Under the pieces are notes generated by a model. It made no database searches, was not told the DNA's origin, and saw only the letters and a program-made list of their open reading frames with translations. From Octopus sinensis (Eukaryota): a stretch of 64,000 nucleotides of DNA. The first letter of the stretch is position 1, and the number at the start of each line of letters is the position of its first letter. Location of the stretch: the NCBI RefSeq assembly GCF_006345805.1, contig NC_043012.1, forward strand, positions 42,966,001-43,030,000. The letters run 5' to 3'. The position numbers and the translations under genes are program-made. Of the stretch, positions 5,195 through 32,951 are shown piece after piece.

Positions 5195-5318
5195 TTAGAA
5201 TTTAGAGAATGATTTCTTGCCAGATGAACCTTTTGAGACTTTCAATACATTGAATCGTACTGTCTTGCTCAGCGGTCTACATTCACCCATAGTCACAACA
5301 TCTCCAATTTGCACATCC
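5195..5318 (-). CDS. RPS11: 40S ribosomal protein S11 (uS17), exon 4 ([41 protein letters not shown])
   Basis: Acceptor ttatttctccag; phase matches exon 3; recognisable RPS11 C-terminus ending in TAA. Confidence 0.97.
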
Positions 5319-5403
5319 CTGGAGAAATAAAGGCAAAATTAATATATGGGAAAAACACTAAAATAAATAAATTGCAAATGGTTTCAAATATAAAAATTCT
5401 TAC

Positions 5404-5609
5404 CTAAAACAAGGACTCATATGCACAGACATATTTTTATGTCTTTTTTCGAATCTATTGTATTTCTTTACATAGTGGAGATAATCCCTTCTTACAACAA
5501 TTGTTCTTGTCATTTTCATTTTAAGAACAGTGCCAGTAAGGATGCGCCCACGAATACTAACATTACCAGTGAATGGACACTTTTTGTCAATGTAAGTTCC
5601 CTCAATGGC
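5404..5609 (-). CDS. RPS11: RPS11 exon 3 ([26 protein letters not shown]...[13 protein letters not shown])
   Basis: Near-identical to the metazoan RPS11 core; ttttacag acceptor and gtaag donor. Confidence 0.98.
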
Positions 5610-5702
5610 CTGTAAAATAGAAATAAAACAGTTGTGCAATCTAACTAGAAATAATCATATAATATTGCATTCACACACGCACCAAGACATAAATATAAGT
5701 AC

Positions 5703-5834
5703 CTCTTTCGGGGTTTTGAAACCAAGTCCAACATTCCGTACATATCTCAAAGATTTCTTCTGCTTTTTAGTGGTTTTAAGCACTTCTTTTCTGTTTAAGA
5801 ATACCGTTGGCTGCTTTTGAAACGATCTTTCAGT
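5703..5834 (-). CDS. RPS11: RPS11 exon 2 (TERSFQKQPTVFLNRKEVLKTTKKQKKSLRYVRNVGLGFKTPKE)
   Basis: 132 bp, 44 codons; ttttag acceptor and gtactt donor; QKQP and GLGFKTP motifs. Confidence 0.97.
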
Positions 5835-5929
5835 CTAAAATATAAGAAGCAGTATAAATAATTGAGCTTTAAACTTTAGAAGTCAAACTAAACAACAGGT
5901 CAACATTTAGAAGCCAAAACTGCCCAACC

Positions 5930-6620
5930 CATGCCAGCACAAAAGGCAGACATTGATGAGGCTTCACCCCAAGCTTACAAAGCATACTGGAGAGTAATAG
6001 ACATCTTGGGACCTGCACCTGAAGAAATCACGTCAGCTGCTGATGGTGGTGCAACACACACATACAACGATTGTATTGGAAGGAGCTTTGCCAGCACTAT
6101 TGGTCTTTCCTCCTGTTGAGTGCACTTTTCTTTGGTAGCAAGTTCCTGTTCCCCCCTTTGCAGTATATCTCCTGCGTGGGCAACCATTTGTGACCTCCCA
6201 TCTCAGGACATTCAGATCAAGCAACCACATACCTCTCTAGCAGATGTCCTGGAAACGAAAAATGAGGTTGTCCTCATGTTGCTGGCTAATTCCCCATATA
6301 GGAGTTCTTTTGGGATGCTGTTGTAGCAGAGTGACTGCCAAGGCATGGTTGAGGACTTAGGTGTTGTGGCCGGTCCACTTGATATCCAAGATGCATCACA
6401 AATTACGAAAGTGGAAGATATTGAGATGCTGCTGTCTCGAGTAGAGGCTTCACGTCTCACTGCTGCAGTGTAGTAAGGATTTTATCATATTCATTGGAGA
6501 TGATTGCCATTTCTCTAATTAGCACACACACATCTAGCAACAGACTCTAGGACATATTTTCTGACATCTAAGGTATACGATCCACACTTAGCACACCCAC
6601 CATTAGATCCCAGGATGATG
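5930..6620 (-). mobile_element. Old RTE-type LINE remnant in RPS11 intron 1
   Basis: Minus-strand IPKELLYGELAS, a typical RTE post-RT motif, within a frameshifted ORF remnant. Confidence 0.6.
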
Positions 6621-7326
6621 TAGGATAGTTGAATCTGTCATTTCTATTAATGACCCGACTCAAAGAATTGCATTCTACAAGACATTTATGTCATATCACA
6701 AATGACATGAATTCAACAACTCAACTCCCTGCATCTGCGGGGTTGGTCGACAACTCTGAGTGTTGCAACCAACCTATGTTCCTTTTACCATGGAATAGAG
6801 TATCCAAAGGAGGAATGTGGAGGCGCGCTGCTTGCCACCGATATCGGAGCATCAGACAAGATTCATCTTTTTAGATACCCATCTACCATTGAATCTCCTG
6901 TTAAGAGTTGATGTATTACTAGGCTGAGATGGATAGCAAATATGATCTTGCAATTGATGGACCCAAGTTCATGCACAGGAAGTAACATCACAAGCATTTA
7001 TCGGCAAGGCCAGAGATTTCTGAATATGCAAGAAAGTACGTTTTCAAAATTTTAAATTCAATAAGCATATAGATGTGTATAAAGAGATTCACAATGGAAT
7101 TAACAAAATCCATTATCAATATTAGCCGTCCAGTGGTATGATTATATTCGCCCGCATTTGCATTGGAGGCTGCAACACTTCATCCGGCTCTAGGATTCTT
7201 CCTCTGCAGTGTAATCGGTTTGTTGGTGCAGATTTAGGTTTTCATATTTGGGTGGCCGAATGTTACTAACTCTCAAAAGATATATGCATATGTATCTATG
7301 TACGCAAATATAAAAGATAATGGGGC

Positions 7327-7492
7327 ACTACTTGAGAATAATGGTCCCGGTTCGCGCACTCGCCGCAGCTAGTCATGACTAGTCGATCCTTACTTTGTGT
7401 TTTATTTACTTTGCTAGGTAGTCGTTGCAGGATCGACTAGTTACGACTAGCTAGCGCGGATGCGCGCACCGGGACCACTGTTCTCAAGTAGT
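7327..7492. mobile_element. 166-bp foldback/MITE-like palindromic element (second, interrupted copy at 7761-8353)
   Basis: Ends ACTACTTGAGAATAATGGTCCCGG and CCGGGACCACTGTTCTCAAGTAGT; inner arms ctagtcgatcct/aggatcgactag. Confidence 0.75.
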
Positions 7493-7852
7493 ACCAATAA
7501 TGGGTGCGTGACCGCGCCCGCACACAAAAACACATTTCATGGCGAAAGTATAGAATGCGTACACCCGGTGTACGTATTCTTTATGTCCGCCCATTTCATA
7601 TATATGTACATACATCTTACACTTTCTCCTCTCACTTCCAAGGAAATGTCGCCGTCCACGTGTCATGAAATCAAAATAAATAAAAATTTTCACGCAAATT
7701 AACGAATAACCAATTGACGTAATTTTGACAGTCATGCTGCTAAAGGGAAAAAAGTCCAGCACTATTTAAGAGTGGTCTCGGTGCGCGCACTCGCGTAAGC
7801 TAGTCGATCCTTACTTTATGTTTTTGTTTTATTTACTTTGTTTTAAAAAAAC

Positions 7853-8234
7853 TTTTTTTCGGTTTGAACGGCAGTTTTTCTAGCTGTGTCATATGAAATC
7901 GTCACCCATAATATCGATCTATTGCATTTCAATCAATTTTAGGGTTAGGGGTGGGGAGAAGGGTATCTTTTTTCTTCACAAATGTAAATAAACCCACTCT
8001 TTCTTAAACGAGAGACATATTCATACGGCACAGATTGTTGTTTACCTCAATAGACGTCAGTGATTAGTCGAAATTGCAGAAAAAAAAATGAAATATCTTG
8101 CAAACTATAGAATTTTCTGAATAGAGCCAAGAGAAAAAGATGTTTTATAAACACATTCTACCAGTATACGAAGTTTAAATTTTTTAGTTACCTAGAAATT
8201 GTGTTAAAAACTGCTGTTCAAACCAAAAAGATCC
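7853..8234. mobile_element. Non-autonomous TIR element nested in the second foldback copy
   Basis: TIRs tttttcggtttgaacggcagttttt / aaaaactgctgttcaaaccaaaaa; same family as 15807-19246. Confidence 0.7.
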
Positions 8235-9119
8235 GTGTAAAAAATCATTTATTTTGTGTGATATTTACTACTTGCTAGGTAGTCAGTGTAGGATCGACCA
8301 GTCACGACTAGCTAGCGCGGATGCGCGCTCCGGGACCACTGTTCTCAAGTAGTAACAAAAATGCAATGGCGTTAACTTTCGTTTCTCAAAAATATAACTA
8401 CCATTGCCTTCACTTTTCAACTGCAACGGAAAACGCGACTCACTCTTCTGTAATTTTACAGTGAGACTCTTTTTCTCTTTACTCAGAATAGGAATCTACG
8501 ATGGTTGAAACATCCGCAAGAAATTAAGTTATTTAGCGTAAAAGATCCTCACCCGGGATCTTTAGAGTGACCAATAATTTCCGACTCCATTCTTTAGGAA
8601 TGCAGTTCAATATTTAAAAAAGAAAATCAAATTCTTCAATCTACGGATAATAAAAGGGTCTACTTCAAAGTTATGTGTACGAACGGATGATGACTTTGCA
8701 TTTACAGATTGAAAAATTGTCGTTTTTTTAAATTTTTCAGACCGAATTAAAATTATTTTAATGAACACGTGGAGAAAGTCAAAGTTTAAAAGAAGCGCTA
8801 GAACAATGAAACGAAGTCTCCTTTTCCAATTCTTTTAACTTTGATAAACTTCAAAAATTTACGATTTCTGTTCTGGATAAATGAGCGAAAATGTGTTATT
8901 TTCTATTTTCTGGCTTCAAAAACCATTGAACCTCACGTGTCTAACGAGAAAAGCACAGATTGAAGGGAATTCATTGAAATCTTTATAAATATATCAGACA
9001 AAAACTTTCGAAGCAATTAACGACATTAAGAAAACGAAAATACAAGACATAAATAGCAGAACCTAATCTAATAATGTTGAAAAGGAAGGAATTTTCGGTT
9101 GGAATCGGAGGAAACTTAC

Positions 9120-9131
9120 CTGATCGGCCAT
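9120..9131 (-). CDS. RPS11: RPS11 exon 1 coding part (MADQ)
   Basis: ATG GCC GAT CAG followed by a gtaagt donor and preceded by the pyrimidine tract ccctctcacatcctttcc (5'TOP/TCT-like). Spliced CDS is 12+132+206+124 = 474 nt, 157 aa plus stop. Confidence 0.93.
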
Positions 9132-9286
9132 GATCGCAGTTTGGAAAGGATGTGAGAGGGCGCTGTAGCTGTGCGCATGCTTACGGAAATAACATCCGGT
9201 TGATTGGACTGCCCTCAAGTGTGAATGTACGGAAGTAATCTTACTAAGGGGAGGCAACTCATAAGACATTTCGTTCCACGTGAAAC
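9132..9286. promoter_or_regulatory. Compact bidirectional promoter/5'UTR region shared by RPS11 and NDUFV3
   Basis: 155 bp between divergent ATGs. Contains a TOP/TCT-like tract (9143-9160), NRF1-like TGCGCATGC (9172-9180), ETS-like CGGAAAT (9184), CATCCGGT (9193) and CGGAAGT (9230), inverted CCAAT (9203) and E-box CACGTG (9277). Confidence 0.75.
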
Positions 9287-9355
9287 ATGTCTGGGATTGA
9301 AAAAGTCGCTCCTTTACTGTTAAGGGGATCAAAGCAAATGAGATTTCCGATACGG
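9287..9355 (+). CDS. NDUFV3: Probable NDUFV3 exon 1, mitochondrial presequence-like (MSGIEKVAPLLLRGSKQMRFPIR)
   Basis: ATG, 23 codons, gtaaat donor in phase 0. Basic, acid-poor peptide; joins to VFC to give an R-x-F|C cleavage-like motif. Confidence 0.7.
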
Positions 9356-10399
9356 GTAAATTTATTTATTTTTATTTCTTCAATGTCACATTTCAACGAG
9401 TTTCTTGATTGAAAATAACCTCCTAAAATCATAACTTATGAAAAAAAAAAAGAACTGCATATTCTAGTCAGTGCGCGGAAACAATGTCGCGAAAACTGTG
9501 TTTATTAGAAATATGATCGGCGCCAATATTAAAATACTTTCTTTCAACTTTATAGTGTGCAGGATATCCTCTAGCAAGCTGGAATTCTGGTTTAAGGACC
9601 CCACATAACCACTCGTAACTTTAAAAAAATTTTTATTTTGTCGTGTTTTCTTTCGTTCTTCACGTATCTGTAAGAATTTGTTCTCTATTTTTGCTATTTT
9701 TGTTCCTTTAGAAATAATTGCTAATAATAATAATTATAGTGAAGGGAAATCTGTGTTTCCTACTTATCACGAATAGAATAAATTCTGGCTGTTAGAAAAG
9801 TGTAATTAAAACTTTTCGCAGCCTTAGCTGTTCACCTTCAGCAATTGTCTCTTCCCAGTTTACTGCTTCATACCCTTCAAACGTTCACGAATGTGACTTT
9901 GGTAAATATTTCGTTAAGGGCCCGTTCCTACCTTGATGTGAAATAATTTTTTTCCACAGGTTTTTACGAAATATTTACCTTATGAACGAGCACTGCTTGA
10001 CAAGGGTGTCGGTGTGTTTACGTCCCCGTAAAATAGCGGTTCGGTATAAAATACCGACAGAATAAATACGAGGCTTAAAAAAAAAGTACTGGGCTCGATT
10101 CGTTCGGCTAAAATTCTCCAAGGCGATGCCCCAGCATGGCTATAATATTATGATTTAAACAATTAAAGGATAAATGAATTGACACAAGATTTAAAAGTGA
10201 CTTTGAACGTCAAAGTCAGTAAGAACGAGCGAGAATTGTAGGAGTTGCTTCCCCTGTGTCTATCAGTGACAAGATTTTGTCTGGTAAGGATGAAACGAAG
10301 ATAAATTTTGAAGTAGGATTTTCTACATAAAATTATAATAGTTTTATGTTTGTTAAAAACAGAATGTTTTGTAAAAAATAACTTTCAGTGACACTACTT

Positions 10400-10822
10400 T
10401 AAGTATTAATGTGTATGTCGTCTGAAAAGTTCAATGTTTTCCAAGGTGGTTGCAGGACATCCAGACCTTGGGTCATCTTCAACACTATCCCTTCCTCTCT
10501 TAAATTCAGCAACCCATTTTTGCGCTGTTGATGAAGCTGGAGTGTTATCCTTTAACATAGCAACTATGTCAGCATGAATATACGTTGAGGCTAAAACCTT
10601 TTTCTGCAGAGACTTAATAACACCACGGTGGCAAATTTTGCCCATTTTCAAATCAAATTGCTACTAGTTTTAAAGTCGTCTTTGAACAGTGAGATGTCAG
10701 TTACCTGGAAAGAAACAATGCAGTTATTGATAAGAAGAGTTGAAATTAATGCATGCAAAATTTCACTGCCGTAGCATCACTCCTTCATAGTCAACCTATG
10801 AACTTTTCAGCCCACCCTTGTA
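10400..10822 (-). mobile_element. Mariner transposon 5' remnant
   Basis: TIR TACAAGGGTGGGCTGAAAAGTTCATAGGTTGA on the minus strand; HTH peptide HRGVIKSLQKK..WVAEFKRGRDSVEDDPRSG. Confidence 0.8.
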
Positions 10823-11857
10823 TATTATTTTTGGTAAATATTTTAACTTCATTGCTTAGGTGATCATTGTTTGCAGTGTATCACTTTGATGTTCAAAAAA
10901 CCTAAAAATATTTTCATCCTAATTTTCTATCACTGGTTATAGATATCCAATTCCTTCCCTTGACAAAAGTGGACTTTGTTTAAAAAATACTTGTTTTTTT
11001 TTTCTCCTTGCTAATTTCATAAAAGTAAATATCGTAACCTTTAGGTGAAGCATCATCAGTGACTGTCGGTATCAAAAAGGACTAAAAAAAATAGCTTAGC
11101 TTTCTTGAATTATGGAAACAAAGGCTCTAAAATAGGTTATGGGTGGGTCTTCTCGAGCTCAGTGAATTACCATTCATCTTGATCTTTTGTCATTTCCTTC
11201 ATGAAACTCAACATCATGAGGTCAGTCTTCACTATTGAATTCCCAATGGCAATTTTCAGGATGAGTTCAAATTATGCGAGAAGGTTGGACTGAATTATAA
11301 GTACAAGCCTGGTTCATGTCTTCTCAGTCTCACTGGCTTGGGTTGACCTGAGGTTGTGGTAAAGGACACATGTGCAACACACAAGCAGGTGAGGTTGAGC
11401 TTAGGCCCTCATGTTTCTGAAGTAAATTCTTTATCCACCCAGCCTTGCCTGAATCTATATTTAAGATTACATGGCAATAACTGACTTAATTCATAGATTA
11501 CCAGACTTGCAGTATTTAGTTGCATCCCTTTACCTTCTCAGTTCAAATCCTGTGGACATTGACATTACTTTTTATTGGGATTAATAAAATATGTTACTAG
11601 GCCTAATTAAAGCAACTGAATTGAATTACCCTCACTCTACACAACAGGAAAGTTTAAACTTTCATACCAACATTTAGAAATCAATATATTTTGGATTTCA
11701 AAGTGCAACAAGGCTAATTAAGTGTAATACAGGGAGAAATAGCAATTTTTGACCTGTAGATCTTGTGTAAATCTTATAAAAAGAAAAAAAGTAAGTTAAA
11801 CTAAAGCCTTAGATAACATTAAAAAAAATTTTTTTATTGTCTTTTAATTTTTTATAG

Positions 11858-13803
11858 GTATTTTGTGATAAGATTTCTTCTGAAAGTGTTACAAAAGATG
11901 TACCTACAAAAGATGTACCTATAAAAGATGTACCTACAAAAGATGTACCTACAAAAGATGTACCTACAAAAGATGTACCTGCAAAAGATTTAGCTGCAAA
12001 AGATGTACCTGCAAAAGATTTAGCTGCAAAAGATTTAGCTGCAAAAGATGTAGCTGCAAAAGATGTAGCTACAAAAGATGTACCTGCAAAAGATGTACCT
12101 GTAAAAGATGTACCTGCAAAAGAGGTACCTGCAAAAGATGTAGCTACAAAAGATGTACCTGTAAAAGATGTAGCTGCAAAAGATGTAGCTGCAAAAGATG
12201 TACCTGTAAAAGATGTACCTGCAAAGGGTGTAGCTGCAAAAGTTGTACCTGCAAAAGGTGTACCTGAAAAAGATGTAGCTAAAAGAGGTACCTGCAAAAG
12301 ATGTACCTGCAAAAGAGGTACCTACAAAAGATGTAGCTGCAAAAGAGGTACCTGCAAAAGGTGTACCTGCAAAAGATGTAGCTGTAGAAGATGTAGCTGC
12401 AAAAGGTGTAGCTACAAAAGATGTACCTGCAAAAGATGTAGCTTCAAAAGATGTAGCTGCAAAAGTTGTAGCTGCAAAAGATGTACCTGCAAAAGATGTA
12501 GCTGCAAAAGATGTACCTGTAAAAGATGTAGCTGCAAAAGATGTGGCTGCAAAAGATGTGGCTGCAAAAGATGTACCTGCAAAAGATGTACCTGCAAAAG
12601 ATGTAGCTGCAAAAGATGTACCTGCAAAAGATGTGGCTGCAAAAGATGTACCTGCAAAAGATGTAGCTGCAAAAGATGTACCTGTAATAGATGTAGCTGC
12701 AAAAGATGTACCCGTAAAAGATGTAGCTGCAAAAGGTGTACCTGCAAAAGATGTAGCTGTAGAAGATGTAGCTGCAAAAGATGTACCTGCAAAAGGTGTA
12801 CCTGCAAAAGATGTAGCTTCAAAAGATGTAGCTGCAAAAGTTGTAGCTGCAAAAGATGTAGCTGCAAAAGATGTACCTGCAAAAGATGTACCTGCAAAAG
12901 ATGTACCTGTAAAAGATGTACCTGCAAAAGATGTGGCTGCAAAAGATGTACCTGTAATAGATGTAGCTGCAAAAGATGTACCCGTAAAAGATGTAGCTGC
13001 AAAAGATGTACCCGTAAAAGATGTAGCTGCAAAAGGTGTACCTGCAAAAGATGTAGCTGCAAAAGATGTACCTGCAAAAGATGTACCTGCAAAAGATGTA
13101 CCTGTAAAAGATGTGGCTGCAAAAGATGTACCTGCAAAAGATGTAGCTGTAAAAGATGTAGCTGCAAAAGGTGTACCTGCAAAAGATGTAGCTGTAGAAA
13201 ATGTAGCTGCAAAAGATGTAGCTGCAAAAGATGTACCTGTAAAAGATGTACCTGCAAAAGATGTACCTGCAAAAGATGTACCTGTAAAAGATGTAGCTGC
13301 AAAAGATGTACCTGTAATAGATGTACCTGTAATAGATGTAGCTGCAAAAGATGTACCTGCAAAAGATGTACCTGTAATAGATGTAGCTGCAAAAGATGTA
13401 CCCGTAAAAGATGTAGCTGTAAAAGATGTACCTGCAAAAGATGTGGCTGCAAAAGATGTACCTGTAAAAGATGTACCTGCAAAAGATGTGGCTGCAAAAG
13501 ATGTGGCTGCAAAAGATGTACCTGCAAAAGATGTAGCTGCAAAAGATGTAGCTGCAAAAGATGTAGCTGCAAAAGATGTACCTGCAAAAGATGTACCTGT
13601 AATAGATGTACCTGTAAAAGATGTACCTGTAAAAGATGTAGCTGCAAAAGATTTACCTGCAAAAGATGTGGCTGCAAAAGATGTGGCTGCAAAAGATGTA
13701 GCTGTAAAAGATGTACCTGCAAAAGATGTAGCTGCAAAAGATGTACCTGTAAAAGATGTACCTGCAAAAGATGCCCCTACAAATGATGCACTTGACTTCC
13801 AAG
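11858..13803 (+). CDS. NDUFV3: Probable NDUFV3 exon 2: VFCDKISSESVT, about 126 K-D-V-(P/A)-(A/V/T) repeats, then NDALDFQ; 2-bp frameshift at about 12281 as assembled
   Basis: Long polypyrimidine/ttatag acceptor and G|gtgagt phase-1 donor matching the last exon. Length 1946 becomes 3n+1 if the 2 nt missing at GCT[GC]AAAAGAG are restored. Confidence 0.72.
11894..13781 (+). repeat. 15-bp coding minisatellite, consensus AAAGATGTA(C/G)CTG(C/T)A, about 126 units
   Basis: Directly visible; (1888+2)/15 = 126 units. Confidence 0.98.
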
Positions 13804-14042
13804 GTGAGTAAACATTTTCTTTTGGATGCAGAGCAAATTTAATTACTATTATTATTTTTTTTACAGTGTTGATAGTTTTGTAAAAATTTCAGCCAAACCT
13901 GCTGAAGCAAAACTCTAGTATTGAAGTACATAGAAAACCAAATATACAGAATCTTACTGAGGCATGGACTAGATGGTTTCGCATAAGGGTAATATTATAT
14001 AATTCTATTGATAGCTGTAGGAAATTCAAAGAAACTATTAAC

Positions 14043-15240
14043 ACACAAAGGGGAGCTGAAAAGTTCATACTGCTGACTATGAAGGAAATCTGTGAAATCT
14101 TACATGCATTAATTTCAACCCTTCTTATTAATAACCACATTGTTTCTTCCCAGGTAAACTGACATCTGACAGTTCAAAGAAGACTTCAGAAGTAACTAGC
14201 ATTGATTTCTCTTGAAAATGGACAAAATTTGGCATTGTGGTTTGTCAAGTGCCTGCAGAAAAAGGTTTCAGCCCCCCCCCCCCTCCCCAGCACATGGTTG
14301 CTTCATTAGGAGATGATGCTTCAGTGCAAAAGCAATCCAATGTTTGGACGTCTTGCAACTGCCACCACTAAGGAAAATTTTGATCGTATTCACTATATGG
14401 TGATGGCTGACAGGTGATTGACTATAAATCAAATAGCCTATGCTATTAATATATGTGAAAGAGTTGAGAATATTCTGTACAATGAACTTGGCATGATGAA
14501 GGTTTCTACTTGCTGGCTGCTATGTCTTCTGATACCTAGTGAAAAGGGCACCAGGTTGATCACATCATGGGAAAATCTGACATTGTTTGAAGCATATCTG
14601 GCTGGTTTCTTTGAATGTTTCTTAACCAAGGGTAAGTGTTGGGTTCATCAATTTGAGCCAGGGAGAAAGAGACACTCCATGCAGTGGAACACCCTTCCTT
14701 ATCTGCTCCAAAGAAGGCTAAGGTCATTTCATCTGCTGGGAAATTGATGACCTCAGTTTTTTTGGATGCAAAAGTATTTGCTATTTTGAAAAGGGCCAAA
14801 CAATTAATAGAGAATACTATGCCACCTTACTGAGGCAGTTCTGAAAAGATATCAAGACCAAATGCCCAGGAAATCTGACAAAAGAGGTCTTCTTTAATCA
14901 GGACAGTGCTGTAGCACACAAGTCCTTGTTTCAATGGCTGCTTTGTGTGACTGTGGCTTAGAACTGGTTGATCACCCTTCCTTATACTCTTGATTTGGCC
15001 CCATCTGACTATTATCTGTTCCCCAACATGAGAAAATACTTGGTTGGGAAACAGTATTGCAGTGATGATGATGTCATATCTGCTGTTGATGACGTTTTTC
15101 TACAAATAATATGAAGGCTTCTTGACCAATGGGATCCAAGCACTGTGACACCGATGGAAGTGTTGAAAAATAAATTTCATTTGGTCACTTTTGATGAGAG
15201 TATCTTGGTCAACCTATGAACTTTTCAGCCGATCCTAATA
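14043..15240 (+). mobile_element. Near full-length decayed mariner element
   Basis: TIR-like ends (gggagctgaaaagttcata; cctatgaacttttcagcc). Transposase fragments ILYNELGMMKVSTCW, WVHQFEP..HSMQW, QDSAVAH and APSDYYLFP. Confidence 0.85.
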
Positions 15241-15806
15241 CAGGATCGGCTGCAAAGTTCAAAGGCTGATCTCATTTTGTCAGGATTGCCTTATTTTGTA
15301 AGTCATTCCTAAGTGTAAGTTTACAATTGCTCTTTAACTGTTGTCAAATGTGTGATGAATATAATTTCCCAAAGAATTGCAGCATAAACAGATTTGAATT
15401 TGTAACCAGAAATAAATGGAATGATTGTCTCATGTGGTCAGTGAAGAATTCTATATTATATTTGTAACAATAACAAGGGGAACTTGGCATTTGGAAGCAT
15501 AAACTTCTTGGGATACTTGAATGTTGAGACCATTTTTGTAGTAATGTATGTTTTGTTTGTTTTATCAGTGGGGGAGAGAGAGATATTTTAACATGTTTTA
15601 ATGTCTGCTGAGTAGTGTTTGACTTGTATCTTTAGTATTTGTGAGAGTTGAAACAAAGTGAAATTGAATTTAACCTTAGATGGAGAATTGGTAGTCAGAT
15701 ATTTGTTACTTTCTGTGGTCTGAAGTTAATTTTGCTGCTCATCCTTCGAGAGTTGATAAAAATGTTCTGATCCAGGGCAGTGGATCAGGAGAACAGTAAG
15801 AATGTT

Positions 15807-18800
15807 GGATCTTTTCCTTTTGAACGGCACTTTGTAACATAATTTCTAGGTAACTAAAAAGTTACTGGTAGAATGTGTTTATAAAACATCATTTTTTTCT
15901 TGGTTTTATTGAGAAAATTCTATAGTTTGAAAGATATTTCGTCTGAAAATCCGAGCATTTCGGCAATTTTAACCAATCGATTACCTCCATTGAACTAAAA
16001 ATCATTTGCTGCGTCTAAAACTGAGACAACATCCTGTCACTAAGCCTAAACTTCACCCTAACCCTAACCCTAAATTTTTTTTTTTCTTAATTGTTAAATT
16101 AATTTAATTGTTACGCGTGTAAAAAAAACGAAATTAAGAAAAAAAATTTAGGGTTAGGGTGAGGTTTAGGCTTAGTGACAGGATGTTGTCTCAGTTTTAG
16201 ATGCAGCAAATGATTTTAGCTCAATTAGAGGCGATTCATTGGTTAAAATTCGAATAATTAAACTATGTTAAACAAACGAATTACAAATGCCAAAACCTTC
16301 CCAGGCAAAGAATGTACCCTGCAACATAGACTGGTAGTTAGTGACTTTAGGATCAGGACTAAGAGGACAACCAGAAGACGACCAACATGGAGAAGAAGGA
16401 TCTGGAAGCTTAAAGATCCTGCGAATGGACAGAGATTTAGGGACATGTTACTTGAAGCCTTTGACGAAGTAGAAGGGGATAGAGTATCACATGGGGTAGA
16501 AGGCAACTGGACGTTTCTAAGGGACAACCTGCTGAGAGCCACTGACCAGATCTGTGGCTGGTGCAAAGTCTCCTATCGTCCCAAGGTAACGTGGTGGTGG
16601 AACAATGTTGTAGACAGGGCTATTAGAGAAAAGAGACAGGCTTGGAAGGACTGGAAGAATGGTGGTAGCAGGGAATAGTATCAGACTGCCAGAAGGGAAG
16701 CTCGGAGACAGGTCTATCTAGCCAGAGGGGAAGCAGACAAGAAAAAATTTGCCAATGTTCTGCGCCGTGAGGACCAAAGACTGGAGGTATTTTGTGTTGC
16801 AAGACAGGGCGTGTGAGAGAGAATTGTGATGTGGTAGGAGAGAAATGTGTTCGCATGGAAGATGGTTCACTTGCGCTAAATGAGGATGCAAAGAGAGAGG
16901 TTTGGAGACGCCACTATGAAAGGTTGCTGAATAAAGAAAATGAATGGGATAAAGAGAGTCTGCCGAATGTCGATCCAACAGAGGGACCAGCTATCTGAGT
17001 TGACAGTTCCTTGGTAGTTAAGGCAATTAGAAGCATGAAGACAGGGAAGGCCAATCAGGAATCACTGCAGAGATGCTCAAAATATCTGGTAGTGTCGGCT
17101 ATAGCCTAGTCACCCGTATAGTTAATCAGGTGATACACGAAGGAGTCATACCCAATGACTGGTGTAGCAGCATAATAGTCAACTGCTACAAAGGTAAAGG
17201 TGACGCCCTAGATACAAATAATTACAAAGGTATCAAGCTGTTGGATCAGGTAATGAAGGTTACAGAGAGGGTCATAGCCCAACTAATTAGAGAGAGAGTT
17301 AGTTTAGATGAGATGCAGTTTGGGTTCGTGCCAGGGAAAAGTACCACTGATGCTATATTCCTGGTAAGGCAGCTGCAGGAGAAATACCTAGCCAAGGATA
17401 AGCCGCTGTACCTGGCTTTTGTTGACATGGAGAAAGCCTTTGACAGGGTCCCTCGATCCCTTATCTGGTGGTCAATGAGGAAACTAGGGATAGATGAATG
17501 GCTGGTGAGGGCTGTGCAAGCCATGTACAGAGATGCCGTAAGTAAGGTTAGGGTTGGCAACATGTACACAGAAGAATTCAAAGTAGAGGTAGGGTTCCAC
17601 CAAGGTTCAGTCCTCAGCCCCCTCCTATTTATCATAGTCCTCCAGGCAATAACAGAGAAATTCAAGACAGGATGCCCCTGGGAGCTCCTCTATGCTGATG
17701 ACCTTGCTCTAATTGCTGAGTCACTATCAGAACTGGAGGAGAAGTTTCAGGTATGGAAGCAAGGATGAGAATCGAAGGGCCTTAGAGTCAACCTAGCTAA
17801 AACCAAAGTCTTAATAAGTAGGAAGGTAGACAAATCACAAACGCCTTCAGGTTGATGGCCCTGCTCGATCTGTAGAAAAGGTGTAGGTAGAAACTCTATA
17901 AGATGCACCAAGTGTAAGCTATGGACACATAAGAGGTGCAGCAATGTCAAAGAAAGGCTAACTAGGAAGATAGTTTTTGTATGTGGCAGATGCTCAGGAG
18001 CAATAAACACTGAAAATGCTCTGAGACCAACTTCTGCCACATTCCAGGGAGAAAAACTAGAAATAGTTGATAGCTTCCGTTACCTAGGTGACCAAGTCAG
18101 TAGCGGGGGCGGATGTGCTGAAAGTGTAACTGCTAGAGTAAGAATAGCTTGGGCAAAGTTCAGAGAGCTCTTACCTCTGCTGGTGACAAAAGGCCTCTCG
18201 CTCAGAGTAAAAGGCAGACTGTATGACGCCTGTGTACGAACAGCCATGCTACATGGCAGTGAAACATGGGCCGTGACTGCTGAGGATATGCGTAAGCTTG
18301 CAAGAAATGAAGCCAGTATGCTCCGATGGATGTGTAATGTCAGTGTTCATACTCGACAGAGTATAAGTACCTTGAGAGAAAAGCTGGACCTAAGAAGCAT
18401 CAGTTGTGGTGCACTGGTATGGTCATGTGGCGAGAATGAATGAAGATAGTTGTGTGAAAAAGTGCCACACCCTAGCAGTTGAGGGAACCTGTGGAAGAGG
18501 CAGACCCAGGAAAACCTGGGACGAGGTGGTGAAGCACGACCTTTGAACTTTAGGTCTCACTGAGGAAATGACTAGAGACTGAGACCTTTGGAAGTATGCT
18601 GTGCATGGGAAGACCCGGCAGGACAAGTGAGACCATAACCCGTGGCCTCTACATGGGATGTAGCCAGTCCACTTATGCATACCTTTCCTTGGACACAAAA
18701 CTCTACTTGTGAAGACCTATTGAGGCAAGTGAGAATCGAAATCGATCAACATCAATGGAAATTGCAGCTGTGATACCAGTGCCAGTGGCACGTAAGAAAA

Positions 18801-19246
18801 CCATCCGAACGTGGCCGTTGCCAGTGCTGCCCCGACTGGCCTTGTGCCAGTGGCACGTAAAAAGCACCATCTGTTCATGGCCATTGCCAGCCTTGCCTGG
18901 CCCCCGTGCCGGTGGCACGTAAAAAGCACCATCCGATTGTGGCCGTTTGCCAGCCTCGTCTGGCATGTAAAAAGCACCCACTACACTCACGAAGTGGTTG
19001 ACATTAGGAAGGGCATCCAGTTGTAGAAACATTGCCAGATCAGACTGGGCCTGGTGCAGCCTTCTGGCTTCCCAGACCCCAGTTGAACCGTCCAACCCAT
19101 GCCAGCATAGAAAACGGACGCTAAATGATGATGATGATGAAAGCCAAGAGAAAAAAATGTTTTATTTTGACACATTCTACCAGTTTATGAAGTTTTATAG
19201 TGTTTAGTTAACTAGAAATTGTGTGCTGTTCAAAAGGAAAAGATCC
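15807..19246. mobile_element. Long-TIR non-autonomous DNA element split by an RTE insertion
   Basis: About 110-bp inverted arms: ggatcttttccttttgaacggcac... at 15807 and ...gctgttcaaaaggaaaagatcc ending 19246. Internal palindrome at 15965-16250. Confidence 0.75.
16262..19140 (+). mobile_element. RTE-clade LINE, 5'-truncated in the endonuclease, with RT, C-terminus, 3'UTR and (GAT)n tail
   Basis: KTFPGKECTLQHRLVVSD; RT motifs QFGFVPGKSTTDAI, FVDMEKAFDRV, QGSVLSP and YADD. A few in-frame stops and frameshifts; ends aaatgatgatgatgatga. Confidence 0.95.
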
Positions 19247-19832
19247 AGAATGTTGAACTGCATTTTTTTATGCAACTGTTTGCATTTAGAATTCAAATCC
19301 ATTTTGGCCCATTTTGGTGGTAGACTTAATCTATTGCTTGATTTATCACCACCAACTAGCACCTAAGGTTGCCTTTAGTGGAGCCCATTCTGTCTCAATC
19401 CACTGGGCTATGTTTTTAGTTTGTGGATGACTTTCTCCTTCTTTTCCACTAGTCTTGGAAGCTTTGTAAAAGGTCACAGGCAATATCTTCCCTCCTGACT
19501 AAAAGATAAAAAAAACAAAACAATCATTCATTGAATCTTGAGTCAGGTTTTATTATCTTAGCTGTTGTTTCAATAACTCTAATTCAGCTCTATGATTAAT
19601 GGTGTGACTATCTTGTCTTCTTAGGATTGCATTATCTAATGTGTTCCCTTATTTGAGATGACAAGGTATGATTTAAGTAATATTTAACTGCTGTCTCTAG
19701 CAGGTTGAATATGTAGAGGCACCTTTGTTGGCTCAAGAGTTTTTCAGTGCAGGTAATCTCTTTCAGTTATATAATTTGCTTAATATTTATGTAATCCTTT
19801 TGGTTTAAATTTCTTTTTTTTTTTAATTTTAG

Positions 19833-19966
19833 TTTTGGCAGAAGATATCGACAATGCTTCTTTCAAATGTAAAGAATATTTTGAACATAATCCTATGACG
19901 TTTTATGATATTGAATCGGGAATGGCAAAATACCGGGCACCACAACCAACTCCAGTTCACAATTAA
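19833..19966 (+). CDS. NDUFV3: Probable NDUFV3 last exon (V-LAEDIDNASFKCKEYFEHNPMTFYDIESGMAKYRAPQPTPVHN*)
   Basis: Strong (T)n-ag acceptor in phase 1. The peptide fits the NDUFV3 C-terminal signature (Y/F-K..EY..HN..TF.D.E..M.K.R.PQP), recognised from memory. AATAAA at 20039-20044. Confidence 0.85.
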
Positions 19967-20299
19967 TTCATGACAATATTCAATAATGTAATAATGATTG
20001 CTAATTCGTTGTTATCAATGTATTGATAGTCGTTTGAAAATAAAGTTTTACACCAAATATTTTATTGAGTTTCATTTTTATTTAAAATTTGAATCCCTTT
20101 AATCTGTTTCAATGTTTTACGATGCATAATGGATAATTTAGAGATGGTGATCATGAATATTCACCATTTACTTTCACTATTCTTGTTGAGTCTTGTGAAC
20201 TGTTTTTTTTTTATATTTCTAATAGATGACATGTATAAAGAGTTAAAGCTAATTTTATCAACTGTCTGTATATTTATTTTTAATCTGGAATTTCTATGA

Positions 20300-21990
20300 A
20301 ATAATCTGCTTAGGGCTACACATTAGGCATGTGGCTAAAGGAAGGTTCTAGCCAAGTCAAGAGTAACATGGTTTTGGATTCATAAGGTTGATAGGGCAGC
20401 TAAGGCTAAGAGATCAGCTTGGAAAACATGGAAGGGTGGTTGTAAGGAGCATTATCAAATGGCTAGAAAGGCATCTAGGTGTTGGGTGTATTTCGTTAAG
20501 TGTCAAGTATAGAGGAAAAGATTTGCACCTGATCCTCTGACTCTGAACCTGCAGCATGAGAGGGTTCAGGATTGTGAGAGCATGTGTGAAAGAGAACCGA
20601 GATGTTATTGGTGACAAGTGTATTTAGAATGATGAAGGCAAATAAGACATTGATATGGAACAAAAGGAAGTGCTATTATGAAAAGCTGCTGAACATGAAG
20701 AATGCATGGGTTAAATAGGAATTACCCTATGCTGACCGAATCAAGGGATCAACAATTCCAGTTTATAGAAGTGTGGTAGATAAAGTAATCAAGGACATAA
20801 AGAGGGGAAAAGTTATAGGCTCTTCAGCGATTGTTACAGAGATGCTCAAAATATCTGGGCGAGTAGGATGCAAGTGGAAGGTGTGACACTGAACAACTGA
20901 CTTAGCAGTGTTATTGTAAACTGCTACAAAGGCAAAGGAGATACCTTCGAAGCAACTATAGAGGAATCAAACTACTAGACAAAGTTATGAAGATCATGGA
21001 GAAAGTTATGGCCCAATTGATCTATGACAGGCATCATAGATACAATCTTCCTAGTGAGGCAGCTACAGGAGAAATACCTGGCTAAGAATAAACTGCTATT
21101 CCTGGTTTTCATTGATTTGGAGAAAGCACTTCACTGGGTACTGTGCTCAGTAATTGGGTTGTCACTGAGGAAAGTAGGTATAGCTGAATGGCTTGTGTGG
21201 GTAGTTGAAGCTATGTAAAGGATACAGAAAGTGAAAGTGAAAGTTGGTAACAATTTCTGAGATGAATTTAGTTCATCGTGGTTCAGTACTCTTGTTTATA
21301 TTTATACAAGCCACCAAAACAGGAATTTCAAGGAGCTATTACCACTGCTGACAAAGATCTTTTCTTCTAGAGTGAAAGAAAGATTGTATGACACTAGTGT
21401 TAGAACTGTGATGCTGCATGACAATGAGACATGGACCTTGAGAAGACTGGAAAGAAAAGAAACGAGTATTCTCTGTTGGATGTGTGATGTAAGTGTGTAT
21501 AAAAGACAATTACGAAACTGGGTAAGAGGAATCAGATGTGTACAAGAAAGAAGACTGTGCTAGTATGGACATGTGATATGTATGGATGAGGGCAGCAGCA
21601 TAATGAAGTCCTGATCGCTTAATGTGGCTGGAATGTGTGGAACAGGGAGACCTAGAAAGACTCCAAAATGAAATTTCTTTTCTATATTATATAAATCTTT
21701 TCATTTTCCTTTTTTTTTAATGTTTACATTTATATCCTGTGCCGGTGGCACATAAAAACCACTATCCAAATGTGGTTGATGTTAGTTCGCCCTGACTGGT
21801 TCCTGTGCCGGTGGTATGTAAAAAGCACCATCCGAACATGATTGATGCCAGTACCCCCTGACCAGCTCCTGTGCTTGTGGCATGTAAAAAGCACCCACTA
21901 CACTCTCAAAGTGGTTGGTGTTAGGAAGAGCATCCTGTTGTAGAAACATTGTCATATCAGACTGGAGCCTGGTGCGGCCTCCTGGCTTTG
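20300..21990 (+). mobile_element. Older, more decayed RTE LINE copy
   Basis: IDTIFLVRQLQEKYLAK..DLEKA and RLYDTSVRTVMLH; same 3'UTR motif (gtggcac..aaaaagcacc) and a tgatgatgatg tail. Confidence 0.85.
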
Positions 21991-27409: not shown

Positions 27410-30400
27410 AGGTCTCTCCTCCCATTTTCTGATTCCTCCGATATGTCGTCAGATGAAGGCGACATTGAAGAATGGCAAATAGTCACAAGGAGGGGAGAAG
27501 AAAAGGGGTAAAAAAGAACAACCACACAATCAAACAAGGCCGTGAGATACACAACTCCCGACAACAAAACTCCCACACGTAACAACACCAGCTCTACAAA
27601 CACACAAACACTAACAATGTTAACAGCCATCAACACCAACAATTTGGACCGGATGCAATACATAAGGTCAAACACCGACATAACACAAGACAATGTTAAA
27701 ACAAACAATCACCCACACACAACACCACCGCAACACATAAAAATCCTGCACATGACGCAAAATACGCACAATACACTGAAATCTCTCTACCCTGATGCAG
27801 TAGGGTACTTTTGTTGATCAGTAAATTTATTTCACTTGAAATTCTATAAATTTTCAACAGCGATTTAGTACCGACAACTAACAAGGCCAAGCTACTCCAG
27901 ACTGATGAAGGTAACTACCCTGAAACTAGTCTCTGATTGCTGGCTTTGTTGGGTGGGGGTGCTTATCTCCTCTGTTTGAAAACTTAAGGACATAGGACGC
28001 TTGTGTCACGTACCTAACTAGAAACGATGTTTCCTGGGGCTAAATAGCAGTAGCATTCTTTCCTTTCCTGGGACTGCCACGTTAAGTTGGTAACAAACAA
28101 TCACTTTATCATGCTGCTACTGTATAAATCTCTCTGAGATGTTTAGAATTGCAATATTTCTAATTCTATATAAAAACTTGCTGACAGAAACTTTCTAGGA
28201 GGATAGCAACCAACTTTCGAACTGTAAGTGACTCTCTCCCTCTTTCCTATTTATTTTTCTCCTTGTGTGTAAAGCACAAATTTCGTTAGAGCCATGCTCA
28301 AAATAGGTAGTGTAAATGAATGCGGCTTGAGGTCGCCTTGGAAACAAGGTTACCTCTTAAATGATATCAATTTACAGAACATAGATATCATAGTCATCAG
28401 TGAAACCAGACTCTCCAACCCGCACCCCCTCCCCAGCCCATATTCGGCAGACAATTCGATATTTATTTTCCCCCGTGTCTACCGAGAATGGGCGGTGGTG
28501 GTACTGCGGTGCTTTTTCGAAAGAATCTGGATCTGAAAGTAAGGGCAGTATTCCTGGACCCGGAGGGAAGGCTGGTCATCCTGGATGTCGATGGCCAGTA
28601 ATGGGTATGCTTTTCCACTGATAACAGTTTATGCACCGTCCTTAACAGGTCGGCCGGATTTCTTTCGACGTGTAGAGGTTTTCCGGGGAACGTCTCGATC
28701 TTTACTTTTAGTGGGGGATTGGAACGCTATCTTGGACACGCATCTAGACTACGTGGGTAGAGATACGAATAGGAGAGGATGTAAATGTCCCAAAGATCTG
28801 CTCAGACGTTTCCAGCTGTCTGACAGGTACCGACTGGACCACCCAAATGTAGCAATGTGGACATGGAGCAAACGCAAGGGGTCGTCCAGATCGTATATAG
28901 ATTGAGTATTCTGTTGAACAGTAGATAGGGATAGTTTAGGTTGTCCACAATTTCATATAGTGAGCTACACAGATCACACATTTGTAACTTGTACGCTTGA
29001 CTTAGATAAGAATCATAGGCAGGGTCCCGGTCACTGGAAACTGAACTCGTCGTTCACGGTGCGCCAGGCTTGCAGAAACCGGATTAGCACATTAGTGATC
29101 GTCAACAACCGCTGGTGTTATGCCCTAAAGAGATCAATCAAAGCAGAATCGTTTAGGTATAGCAAGGCTTTAGCAATAGACCGAAATAGAATAGAGGGAG
29201 GCTAAACTCAAAAGATGCGTTGTCAGAGCTAGGATGCATGCTCCGAAAAACGAAGGTGTTGCAGCAGCCTGAGATGCCCGGGTGGCGGAGGCACAACGAG
29301 GCCACAAAATCACCATTCGGTCACTAATGGATAAACAGGAGCACGAAATACTCGAGCCCGAAAAGATATGTGAGGCTTTTCAGCAGCATTTTGCCCGACT
29401 GTCCAGGACGACTGGTGCCTACCTGCATGGCCTGCCACGACTCTCGGCAAGAAAGGTGGTGTGTAGTGAAAGACTTATCACAGCCGCAGTTGTACGGAAC
29501 GTGATAGCAGGCTGTGCGGGAGACAAGTCACCAGGCTTGGATGGTTTGAACTACGAGCTTTCTTGTCATATGCCAGACTTGTTTGGAGAAGCCTTGGAAA
29601 CAGTCTACTGCAACTGGCAGCAAAACAGGTGTATCCCAGTTTTGTGAAGCGAGGAGCAGTGACGCTGCTAAAGAAAGAACCAAGCAAGTAGGGTGTTATA
29701 GATAATTTCCGGCCCATCACTCTGCTCAACACAGATCTGAAGATTTTGGCCGAGATGCCAGCCGAGACGTAAGCGCTGGTCATCGAAAAACTGGACGACA
29801 GGGCGCAAATATGCGCCGTGCCGGGAAGGAGTATGACAACCTCCATCTTATGCGCTACATTCTAGACGGGGTAGTTAAAGAACCTGGCATCGTTACTTGG
29901 AGGCTGTCCTCAGAGCGGCTGGTTTTGATCCCATCTTCCGCGGTTGGATCGCTGCTTTATACAGCGGCATCCGCTCGGTAGTTCGCGTAAATGGTCATCT
30001 GTCCAGACCATTTTACATCATGCGTTCGGTCCGTCAAAAATGTCCTCTCTCGTCGCTTTTGTATGTATTGACTCCAGAGCCATTATTGCGGAAGCTGGCG
30101 ACGCTGAGGGGCATCCCGCGAGAATTGGGATGCGGGAGGAGCGTTTCTGCATACGCAGACGACGTCACCGTCACAGTGTCGAGCCACAGTCATATCGACC
30201 TGGTCGGCGAGACACTAAAAGATTAGGAAGCGGTAACGGGAGCGAAAATTAACCCGGAAAAGTCAGTGGGCTTTCGGCTCGGCACCTGGAGAAGCAAGCC
30301 TATACCGTCCAACAACATCTTCATCGTGGGACACTGGGCCGACAGACCGGTTAAATTGCTCGGAGTCTGGTTTGGTCTGGATCTCCAAATGGAAAAGAAC

Positions 30401-31356
30401 TGGGTCGAGATAACTAGTAGAGTGGCTAGTCACACCAAGCAATAGGCCAAGAGGAAGTTATCTGTAAAAGGTTGGACTGAGGTATCGAATGCGTATATCG
30501 CATCCGTCATCTATTACCGTCTGACCGTCGTGCGTTGTCCGGAACCTATGCGTTTCATAGACGACGGTGAACAGGTGTGGTCGCCGTTTGTGAGGTGCGC
30601 TTTCTCGCAACTTGTCTCTTTGACCGAACTGCAGTCGTGGATAAAACAGAAACCGAGGCTGGGTGAATGGCACCGCGAGTACCGCCTTGCTCTCGAACAA
30701 CTCTGTAATGTCCAAACATTTCAGACCTGTGGGCTGATGTCGAACGGCTGCTGTCATGTGTGGGACGAATTCGGTTGTCGGCCGAGTCTATTGTGAATAT
30801 TACTCCGCCACCCTCCTTTAACTGGGAAGGGAAGGTAGTTTCTATTGTACTAGTGGCTAGGGTAAAAGAATGTGTGTGGTGGACTCGTGCGAAAGGTTTA
30901 GAGAGTAACACTTTCCTCTCTGGCCAATCGCTCATCAACTTTTTCAAGTACCACTTGAAAAGGAAGGTGAGAATAGAGAGGGAAGCTTTGTCTCTTTAAA
31001 GTTTCAATAAAAGGTGGGTGAATGTAGCAAAGATGGTGAATGACATAACCACTTTGAGCATAATCCTGTAAATTCAAGAGAAGAGAGAGAGAGAGCGCTT
31101 TGCTCTCATGTGTTCTTTCCCTGCCTGAGGTTACTGTGGTCTTTTTCGTAGGCTTTTCTTTCCACGGATAAACCTAATCTGTATTAAATTTTTACTTCCC
31201 CTTCTGGGAACTCTGTTATAAACGGAACATTATTATTTCGCTGTTTACATGTCCCAAACGCTTTCGATCCCTTCTGAAAAAGAAAAGTTCTACAGTGTAT
31301 TGTTCCCTCTGTATTCGGTCCTGCGTGCCTAATAAAGAAATCTGTCTGCCTGTCAT

Positions 31357-31357
<1 letters not shown>
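27410..31357 (+). mobile_element. Tx1/L1-clade retrotransposon copy A (5'-truncated, most decayed)
   Basis: ORF1 3' end; ORF2 from 28294 with APE endonuclease (MLKIGSVNECGL, ISETRL, GDWNA, TDH), RT (SAYADDVTV) and C-terminus; many stops and deletions; AATAAA at 31331, then (CTAT)n. Confidence 0.9.
27898..27935 (+). ncRNA. Minimal type I hammerhead ribozyme (Penelope-type)
   Basis: CAGA-CTGATGA-AGG(TAACTAC)CCT-GAA-ACTAGT-C/TCTG. Helix I CAGA:TCTG, intact core, 3-bp stem II, palindromic ACTAGT helix III, GUC cleavage triplet. Confidence 0.8.
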
Positions 31358-31422
<65 letters not shown>

Positions 31423-31443
31423 CATCTATCTATCCATCTATCC

Positions 31444-31539
<96 letters not shown>

Positions 31540-31544
31540 GTCTG

Positions 31545-31621
<77 letters not shown>
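31358..31621 (+). repeat. (TATC)n microsatellite between copies A and B
   Basis: Directly visible. Confidence 0.98.
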
Positions 31622-32869
31622 GTGGTCGCCGTTTGTGAGGCACGCATTCCCGCAACTCGTCTCCATGACCGAACTACAGTCGTGGATCAAAAAGAGGCCG
31701 AGGAAGGGCGAATGGCACCGCGAGTGTCGCGTTGCTCTCAAGCAACTCTGCCGTCCCGGGTCGACCTTGAGTGACTTCAACACAACCAAAGCATTCTATA
31801 GGGGATTAGTGGAGGGGAGGTACGACGACGAGCTCGGGGCAAACCTGGGCGTCGACGAGGAATACCTGACCCGCCTGTTTCAAACGACTTTCGGCCCGGG
31901 ACCTATGGACAACTTCCAGAGATTCCTGGCCTGGCGGTGCTACCGAGAAGCGCTACCCGTTCGGGATAAGCTCTATAGGCATGGCTCGAGAAACACGGGG
32001 CCGACCTGCCCGAGATGCGGGCAGAGCGACGAAACCGCTCTGCACGCAATCGTGCAGTGTCCAGCAATTTCCGACCTGTGGGCTTATGTCGAACGACTGC
32101 TGTCACGTGTGGGACGTGTCGGTTTATCAGCCGAGTCTATCGTTAATATCGTCACGCCTCCTTCCTTCAAACGGGAAAGAAGAGCTATTTTTATCATACT
32201 TGTGGCTATGGCGAAAGAATGTATCTGGTGGACGCGCCTGAAAGGATTAGAGACAAACACTTTCCTCTCTGGTCAATCTCTCATCAACTTCTTCAAGTAT
32301 CACTTGAAGAGGAAAGTGAGAGTAGAGAGGCAAGTTTTGTCTAGTGAATGTTTTAAAAAAAGATGGGTGAATGTAGCAAGGATGGCACGTATGAATGACG
32401 AAGCCACCTTGAGCATAATCCTATGAACCCAGAAATTGAAAACAGAGGGTTACCCACTTGCAAACAAATGTGGTAACATATAACAATATTGACCAAGGTT
32501 ACCGGGGTCTTTTTCGTAGGCTTTTCTTCCCACGGATAAACCTTACTTGCTTTCCCCTTTACACCATACATCATGACACTGTGATACACGATCCCTATTG
32601 ATCGTTTTTTTTCCTCTCCCCCTTTTTTCCTCTTTTTTCTTCTTTTTTCATTTTTCTTTTCTTTTTTTCCCTTTTTTCTTTTTTTTCCTTTTTTTCTTCT
32701 TTTTTTTCTCTTTTCCTTTTTTTCTTTTCTTCTTTTTTTGTTCTTTTTTCCCTTTTACGATCCCTTTTGATCGAAAACCTACGCCACCTTTTTTTTTCTC
32801 CCCAAAAGAAAAGCTCTACCTTGTAACTTGTCCTATCTGTGTGCAGCCCTGTGTGGCCAATAAAGAAAC

Positions 32870-32870: not shown

Positions 32871-32951
<81 letters not shown>

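Follow-up and report, generated by a model that had tools for sequence, protein, structure and literature searches.

Recent expansion of a 15-bp tandem repeat in the middle exon of an octopus NDUFV3 ortholog

NDUFV3 is a small accessory subunit of complex I, about 100 residues long, that clips onto the N-module's tip by a C-terminal peptide. Here, we describe an octopus member of this family whose middle exon is occupied almost entirely by a tandem array of 15-bp units. The gene lies in a 64,000-nucleotide stretch of Octopus sinensis (NCBI RefSeq assembly GCF_006345805.1, contig NC_043012.1, positions 42,966,001 to 43,030,000 of the forward strand), which we refer to as the window and in whose coordinates all positions are given. 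With about 126 pentapeptide units, the conceptual protein is roughly seven times longer than the short orthologs of the family. We consider it fairly probable that the locus is an NDUFV3 ortholog in which a coding minisatellite has grown within a tolerant, disordered linker. What is new is this recent giant expansion of octopus NDUFV3; the family and its C-terminal binding peptide were already known.

The gene is read from the + strand in three exons. Exon 1 (9287-9355; ATG...CGG/GTAAAT, with the slash marking the exon border) encodes MSGIEKVAPLLLRGSKQMRFPIR and ends in phase 0 at the donor CGG/GTAAAT. Its product is basic, with five K/R and one acidic residue, and represents a putative mitochondrial presequence; exon 1 is conserved in Octopus bimaculoides and Argonauta. 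Exon 2 (11858-13803; 1946 bp, TTTTTTATAG/GTA...CAAG/GTGAGT) contains, in order, 12 unique codons (VFCDKISSESVT), the repeat array, and the codons for NDALDFQ with a single leftover base, which the two opening bases of exon 3 complete to a codon. The last exon (19833-19966) is entered in phase 1 and encodes (V)LAEDIDNASFKCKEYFEHNPMTFYDIESGMAKYRAPQPTPVHN, followed by a TAA at 19964-19966. An AATAAA located 73 nt past the stop codon (20039-20044, + strand) is the likely polyadenylation signal. The frame encoding KDVxA enters exon 2 in phase 0 and exits in phase 1, agreeing with exon 3. When exon 1 is instead joined directly to exon 3, the product is out of frame and reads FWQKIST...IIL before a stop. 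A sequence-only reading of this DNA had proposed the same architecture: an exon 1 in phase 0, a 1.95-kb exon of about 126 repeat units running from phase 0 to 1, a repeat flanked by the N-terminal exon on one side and the C-terminal binding peptide on the other, and no in-frame junction between the first and last exons. Our reading of the exons and the output of Tandem Repeats Finder (TRF) bore out each of these points, and the same three-exon model is annotated for the syntenic O. bimaculoides gene, LOC106883869.

The identity of the gene was established from its last exon, in line with the earlier proposal. Against the Pfam family PF15880 (NDUFV3), this exon scored 44.4 bits (cutoff 25; E = 1.6e-11) and covered profile positions 1-34 of 35, with the family motif occupying 19850-19951 on the + strand. 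A phmmer search of the PDB with the last exon matched NDUFV3 chains of complex I structures only (7vxu_K [E = 4e-4], mammalian short form, 471-aa long form 8ud1_1s, and Drosophila 8b9z_s). The C-terminal peptides of the window copy are EYFEHNPMTFYDIESGMAK and YRAPQPTPVHN, and its motif, F-K-C-K-E-Y-F-E-H-N-P-M-x-F-Y-D-I-E...K-Y-R-x-x-Q-P, is the same as that of the short orthologs. The motif sits at the extreme C-terminus, in the last exon; its placement matches that in 26 hits to the family (46-112 aa). When 1.84 billion representatives were scanned exhaustively with HMMER, all genuine hits fell within 46-112 aa, and the three longer ones were unrelated repeat proteins. When the two termini were used as the query against a 5.8-billion-protein database, a single cluster was recovered, namely, the short O. 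bimaculoides protein of LOC106883869. Its isoforms X1 (106 aa, XP_014790491.1) and X2 (87 aa) both contain PF15880, and both include exon 2. Judged by the motif, its placement, and orthology, the locus belongs to the NDUFV3 family.

The orthologous locus of O. bimaculoides (CM046615.1) aligns collinearly with the window, at 80-90% nucleotide identity; its three exons have matching boundaries, and its divergent neighbor is again RPS11 (uS17). There, exon 2 is only 118 bp long and holds five units, KDVPR, KDVPT, NDAPT, HDAPT, and DDAPD. The acceptor (TTTTTTATAG/G), the donor (CAAG/GTGAG), and the first 12 codons (36 nt) of the exon are conserved between the two species. Exon 1 aligns with its counterparts in O. 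bimaculoides (MAWIEKVAPLLLSRSKQIKFPIR; 17/23 identical) and Argonauta hians (MFSIEKTAIYLLRRSKQMK), and the last exon is identical to that of O. bimaculoides at 39/43 positions.

In the window, TRF reported one array at 11892-13788 (period 15, 126.6 copies, 88% matches, 0% indels, score 2751, consensus CAAAAGATGTACCTG). Read in the coding frame on the + strand, the candidate coding minisatellite extends over 11894-13781 as 126 units of 15 bp with the consensus AAAGATGTACCTGCA, encoding KDV[P/A][A/V/T]. With its 27 unit variants, the array forms a mosaic and not a collapsed perfect repeat; runs of identical units never exceeded four at any lag. As for higher-order structure, blocks resembled one another only weakly, at lags of 18-26 and 63 units, and a unit-lag comparison found no long exact blocks within the array. 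A two-unit probe, with three or fewer mismatches allowed, gave 105 matches, all on the + strand within 11924-13766; shuffled sequences lead one to expect 0. A dispersed satellite or a transposon as the source of the 15-bp unit was ruled out, there being no copies outside the array. A minus-strand gene at the array was also rejected, as the open reading frames (ORFs) on that strand merely reflect the composition of the units.

The peptide that this array would encode consists of 24% Val, 23% Ala, 19% Lys, 18% Asp, and 11% Pro. Its fraction of charged residues is 0.37, its net charge per residue is about 0, and its longest proline-free stretch spans at most 24 residues; serine makes up 0.3% and forms no run. 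A single-sequence AlphaFold2 model gave the array a mean predicted local distance difference test (pLDDT) score of 33.6 and no secondary structure, which is weak evidence that fits disorder. Being net neutral, with alternating charges and proline throughout, the repeat linker is probably disordered.

We found the same array in a second genome, the chromosome assembly of Octopus vulgaris (GCA_951406725.2, OX597828.1), whose locus was reached via the RPS11 protein. That assembly was built from Oxford Nanopore Technologies (ONT) plus 10x data and annotated with Iso-Seq and RNA-seq (PMC10700109). Compared with the window, the unique sequence of the two introns is 99.1-99.6% identical, the intergenic region 99.4%, and exon 1 100%. 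Exon 2 of O. vulgaris is 2068 bp long and contains a TRF-type array of 134.6 units (90% matches, 0% indels). Its KDVxA frame runs from phase 0 to 1 and is free of stops from one end of exons 1 and 2 to the other, and the conceptual translation is 756 aa. The arrays of the two genomes have identical ends and many common marker units and are about 28 whole-unit indels apart; whole-unit change in the array is far above change in the flanks.

The earlier reading suggested comparing unit number across species: O. bimaculoides has 5 units, against 126.6 in the window and 134.6 in the O. vulgaris assembly. Outside Octopus, the family proteins are short: 98 aa in Argonauta hians (GAB1605010.1), 96 aa in the oyster Magallana gigas (XP_011432511), and 108 aa in a tick. 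The Argonauta protein carries no units and has a short K/E/P/A/V-rich linker. At the RPS11 locus of the cuttlefish Acanthosepion pharaonis, there was no NDUFV3 within 10 kb, leaving no decapodiform outgroup by synteny. According to published estimates, O. bimaculoides and the vulgaris/sinensis clade split about 34 million years (My) ago. Since the array is common to two genomes of the vulgaris complex and O. bimaculoides has five units, the expansion is younger than ~34 My. It is real, recent, and fast-evolving. The proposal that it arose in this lineage independently of the mammalian long isoform also held up, given the five units of O. bimaculoides, the 98-aa protein of Argonauta hians, and family hits of 46-112 aa.

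We propose the following history. The Octopus ancestor would have possessed a constitutive middle exon that already contained five degenerate units of 15 bp. Later, within the O. vulgaris species complex, a single type of unit (AAAGATGTACCTGCA, KDVPA/KDVAA) would have been amplified to ~126-135 copies, either by replication slippage or by unequal exchange. Unit length is divisible by three, so that gains and losses keep the frame, and an array whose copy number changes in this frame-neutral way could grow unchecked in a tolerant part of the protein. If the transcript is spliced like that of the ortholog, and if the product is translated and imported into mitochondria, it would comprise the presequence, a flexible polyampholyte linker of ~630-670 aa, and an unchanged peptide with which to bind complex I. 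On the enzyme, the linker could act as the tether envisaged in the earlier reading. The whole product would have a mass of ~73-77 kDa, compared to the usual ~10 kDa. Mammalian NDUFV3 is disordered in its N-terminal part, its long isoform has 423 additional disordered residues, and the effects of a knockout are minor (PMC8762328, PMC5293009). As this part of the protein is disordered and dispensable in mammals, the octopus expansion was, by analogy, probably tolerated rather than adaptive.

Several observations weigh against the view that the array is part of an expressed and functional subunit. A length of 1.9 kb is unusual for an internal exon. Of the three frames on the + strand, two are open owing purely to the sequence of the unit, which makes an open frame weak evidence for translation. 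Changes among units at codon positions 1, 2, and 3 numbered 78, 48, and 20, so that third positions vary least; codon-position variation among units gave no signature of purifying selection on the repeat, the pattern being opposite to the one expected. Relative to O. bimaculoides, exon identity (87-94%) is not above intron identity (90-95%), and exon 3 differs by 5 nonsynonymous and 4 synonymous changes. These codon-position and exon/intron tests do not separate a functional gene from a drifting one. In O. vulgaris, the deposited gene call from the same ATG is 711 aa long, which is 45 aa (nine units) below the conceptual translation, and this model has no Pfam hit on record. A search of the 5.8-billion-protein database with the repaired 716-aa query returned no array-bearing protein. 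In the window copy itself, the frame that begins at the start codon is broken by a gap after 12280 and does not reach the motif; the ORF as assembled, which would give a Cys/Lys/Arg-rich product of 665 aa, turns into (KRCxC)n and stops before the NDUFV3 motif.

The 711-aa gene call is at the same time an indirect hint that the array is transcribed and translated. The shorter O. vulgaris product could come from cDNA of animals with shorter arrays or from a small artefactual intron. Removal of any of 13 canonical in-frame 135-nt introns in the O. vulgaris array gives a candidate for the 711-aa model; 10 of these proteins were looked up by exact sequence, and none was present in the collection. 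Neither homology search returned the 711-aa protein, though RPS11 from the same annotation was returned. The matches to the 716-aa query were low-complexity look-alikes only, namely, a Varroa HC2-like protein and three unnamed ENA proteins.

The break in the frame can be traced to a 2-bp gap at 12280-12281 on the + strand, where KDVxA shifts to KRCxC. The window reads CCTGAAAAAGATGTAGCT--AAAAGAGGTACC at this site (GTAGCT^AAAAGAGG after 12280), and the start-to-start spacing of units is 28 vs 30. A TGA at 13784-13786, 17 nt upstream of the end of exon 2, closes the assembled ORF. At the same site, beside the shared marker units KGVPE-KDVAT-KEVPA, O. vulgaris reads CCTGAAAAAGATGTAGCTACAAAAGAGGTACC and has the bases AC. 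With two bases filled in, we computed a 716-aa protein, the length that had been claimed for the repaired gene. Long tandem repeats are the commonest failure spots of long-read consensus and short-read polishing. The gap is most likely an error of the assembly consensus in a hard-to-polish repeat or else a private allele.

Alternatively, the deletion could be real in the animal or the species, in which case the copy would be a null or degenerating allele. The mRNA would then encode presequence-(KDVxA)29-(KRCxC)97, with a stop 17 nt before the last exon junction, and there would be no functional NDUFV3. The sequence as given reads in this way. Furthermore, a stop <50 nt from the last junction might allow the transcript to escape nonsense-mediated decay, and a null allele could persist given that loss of NDUFV3 is mild in human cells (PMC8762328). 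The lack of a selection signature, both on the repeat and on the exons relative to O. bimaculoides, points in the same direction. However, the gap is the sole non-unit indel in 1.9 kb, and it falls in the kind of repeat in which consensus and polishing often fail. In addition, the O. vulgaris copy is unbroken despite the near identity of its introns, and exon 3 retains a score of 44 bits against the family model, with its changes sitting at family-variable positions. Taking both sides together, we regard a real deletion as unlikely.

A more ambitious interpretation is that the expanded subunit is maintained for a function. Under it, a ~75-kDa NDUFV3 would sit at the tip of the matrix arm with a PEVK-like polyampholyte arm of 630-670 residues, less than ~34 My old and independent of the mammalian long isoform, that might, for example, form a steric brush or offer a docking scaffold at the surface of the cristae. 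If true, the octopus case would indicate, by convergence, that the N-terminal arm of NDUFV3 has a function and is more than a tolerated appendage. We find this quite doubtful and continue to favor a minisatellite that expanded in a tolerant linker.

It is also conceivable that the array exists in the genome and is largely or wholly removed from the mature mRNA, whether through internal splice sites or as an "exitron," such that the functional protein is short. Very long internal exons are often poorly defined. There are many GT and AG dinucleotides in the array, which make 13 in-frame canonical 135-nt GT-AG introns possible in O. vulgaris, and the deposited product of that species is exactly 9 units below the conceptual one. 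Splice sites were scored by a crude position weight matrix (PWM), and the true donor of exon 2 reached 12.3 bits vs 5.5 bits for the best internal GT. Within exon 2, no internal AG was preceded by a tract that was >50% pyrimidine. Moreover, a 711-aa product requires ~2 kb of coding sequence, of which the array is the sole source, and outright skipping of exon 2 breaks the frame. Given the weak internal sites and the presence of exon 2 in both annotated O. bimaculoides isoforms, constitutive inclusion in the mRNA is the default expectation. We consider removal of the array by splicing very unlikely.

Finally, assemblers can mis-size tandem repeats and the counts do differ (126.6 vs 134.6), but an assembly artefact, such as a mis-expanded short repeat, is almost certainly not the explanation for an array that two independent assemblies place in the same exon with common marker units and identical ends, and whose mosaic of 27 variants, with identical runs of four or fewer, is the opposite of an artefactual perfect expansion.

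Within the family, a parallel is offered by the long mammalian isoform. NDUFV3 is the last subunit to join complex I, and mammals have both a 10-kDa and a 50-kDa form, the function of whose long arm is unknown (PMC5293009, PMC8762328). The 50-kDa form (NDUFV3-L, or MIPP65) resembles the proposed octopus product in that a large, poorly conserved, and predicted-disordered insertion lies between the N-terminus and the peptide that binds the cleft of NDUFV1 and NDUFV2 (PMC5293009, PMC8762328). In mammals, however, the extra sequence is an alternatively spliced exon 3 that is not repetitive, and the short isoform coexists with the long one. In the window, it is a tandem expansion of 15-bp units lodged in the counterpart of the ortholog's constitutive exon 2, with no in-frame skipping visible. 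The mammalian insertion also has a conserved serine-rich acidic motif (PMC5293009), whereas the octopus array is without a string of serines. On these comparisons, the octopus locus is not a mammalian-type long isoform; the two additions would occupy the same topological position and are of independent origin.

Mechanistically, the array resembles the exons of coding minisatellites, also known as variable-number tandem repeat (VNTR) exons, such as those of mucins and aggrecan. The likeness extends to head-to-tail units that are a multiple of 3, confined to one large exon, with rapid gain and loss, interspersed variants, and older, diverged edges. In contrast to those examples, the host is a subunit of the mitochondrial respiratory chain instead of a secreted or structural glycoprotein, and the unit is 5 residues long. 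By its period, location, and copy-number variation, the sequence is that of a coding minisatellite. In composition, it recalls the PEVK segment of titin and the side-arm repeats of neurofilaments, which are low-complexity sequences rich in Pro, Val, Lys, and acidic residues that are expected to behave as extended, flexible polyampholytes. The analogy is confined to composition and to how the segment might behave; the sequences are unrelated, and membership of those families is not implied.

Should the long form be present on the enzyme, the ~7-fold enlargement of a subunit relative to close relatives (106 aa vs >700 aa) would amount to a natural experiment. Comparisons of complex I activity, reactive oxygen species (ROS), supercomplexes, and interactors would then test whether the arm has a function or occupies a tolerated position. 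There is a lesson for annotation as well. The reading frame of the gene is interrupted in the assembly, the protein was missed by homology search, and trypsin, like Lys-C and Asp-N, would cut the repeat to 5-residue peptides (DVPAK, DVAAK) that routine proteomics skips; for these reasons, such a protein could be missed systematically.

Upstream of NDUFV3, the window contains RPS11 (uS17) on the - strand at 5195-9131 (coding exons 9131-9120, 5834-5703, 5609-5404, and 5318-5195; 157 aa). The two genes are arranged head-to-head, as they also are in O. bimaculoides and O. vulgaris. RPS11 is annotated in the latter as a 203-aa protein with an N-terminal extension, and the model looks overextended. 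Between the RPS11 ATG (9131, - strand) and the NDUFV3 ATG (9287, + strand) lie 155 bp (9132-9286), a spacing that is identical in O. bimaculoides (9845/10001 in the extracted locus). This intergenic region is probably a bidirectional promoter. It contains TGCGCATGC and CGGAAGT / ACATCCGG, which we take to resemble NRF-1 and ETS/GABP (NRF-2) sites. Sites of these kinds are typical of promoters of oxidative phosphorylation (OXPHOS) and ribosomal-protein genes.

Intron 2 of NDUFV3 carries an insertion of ~3.5 kb (15806-19277) that appears as a gap in the collinear alignment of the window with the O. bimaculoides locus and is missing from the intron of that species. Pieces of it match elsewhere in the O. 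bimaculoides locus, and an ORF at 17073-17768 matches RVT_1 (E = 1.1e-24). From these matches, we identify the insertion as a fragment of a long interspersed nuclear element (LINE) retrotransposon that forms no part of the NDUFV3 product. Further copies of this element family occur at 277-923 in the window and in the O. bimaculoides locus. A 62-66-bp unit (GTGCCAGTGGCACGTAAAAAGCACCATCC...) is repeated 2-3 times at 18779-18964 and at 21735-21895 and recurs at several sites of the O. bimaculoides locus; it probably belongs to a dispersed element resembling a short interspersed nuclear element (SINE).

Downstream of the gene, a cluster of fragments of retrotransposons lacking long terminal repeats (non-LTR) occupies 29000-44000 on the + strand. 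It includes matches to Exo_endo_phos (35497-36432 and 40553-41164), RVT_1 (41806-42831), and zf-RVT (31620-32426, 36825-37634, and 42832-43983), and long (TCTA)n / (TATC)n microsatellites lie between the fragments (31357-31621, 32871-33053, 38131-38245, and 44275-44400). At 45017-45133, there is a perfect 17-bp tandem repeat of 6.9 copies with 100% identity (CCAGCTCGCCGCCTTGA), which is GC-rich amid AT-rich sequence. An ORF at 48891-49640 with a match to a PIF1-like helicase (E = 4e-54) is probably a fragment of a Helitron-type transposon. Lastly, an inverted repeat at 55364-56458 has 459-nt arms (55364-55822 and 56000-56458) that are 99% complementary and flank a 177-nt spacer; each arm holds a duplicated 27-nt motif, and the structure may be a foldback-type element.

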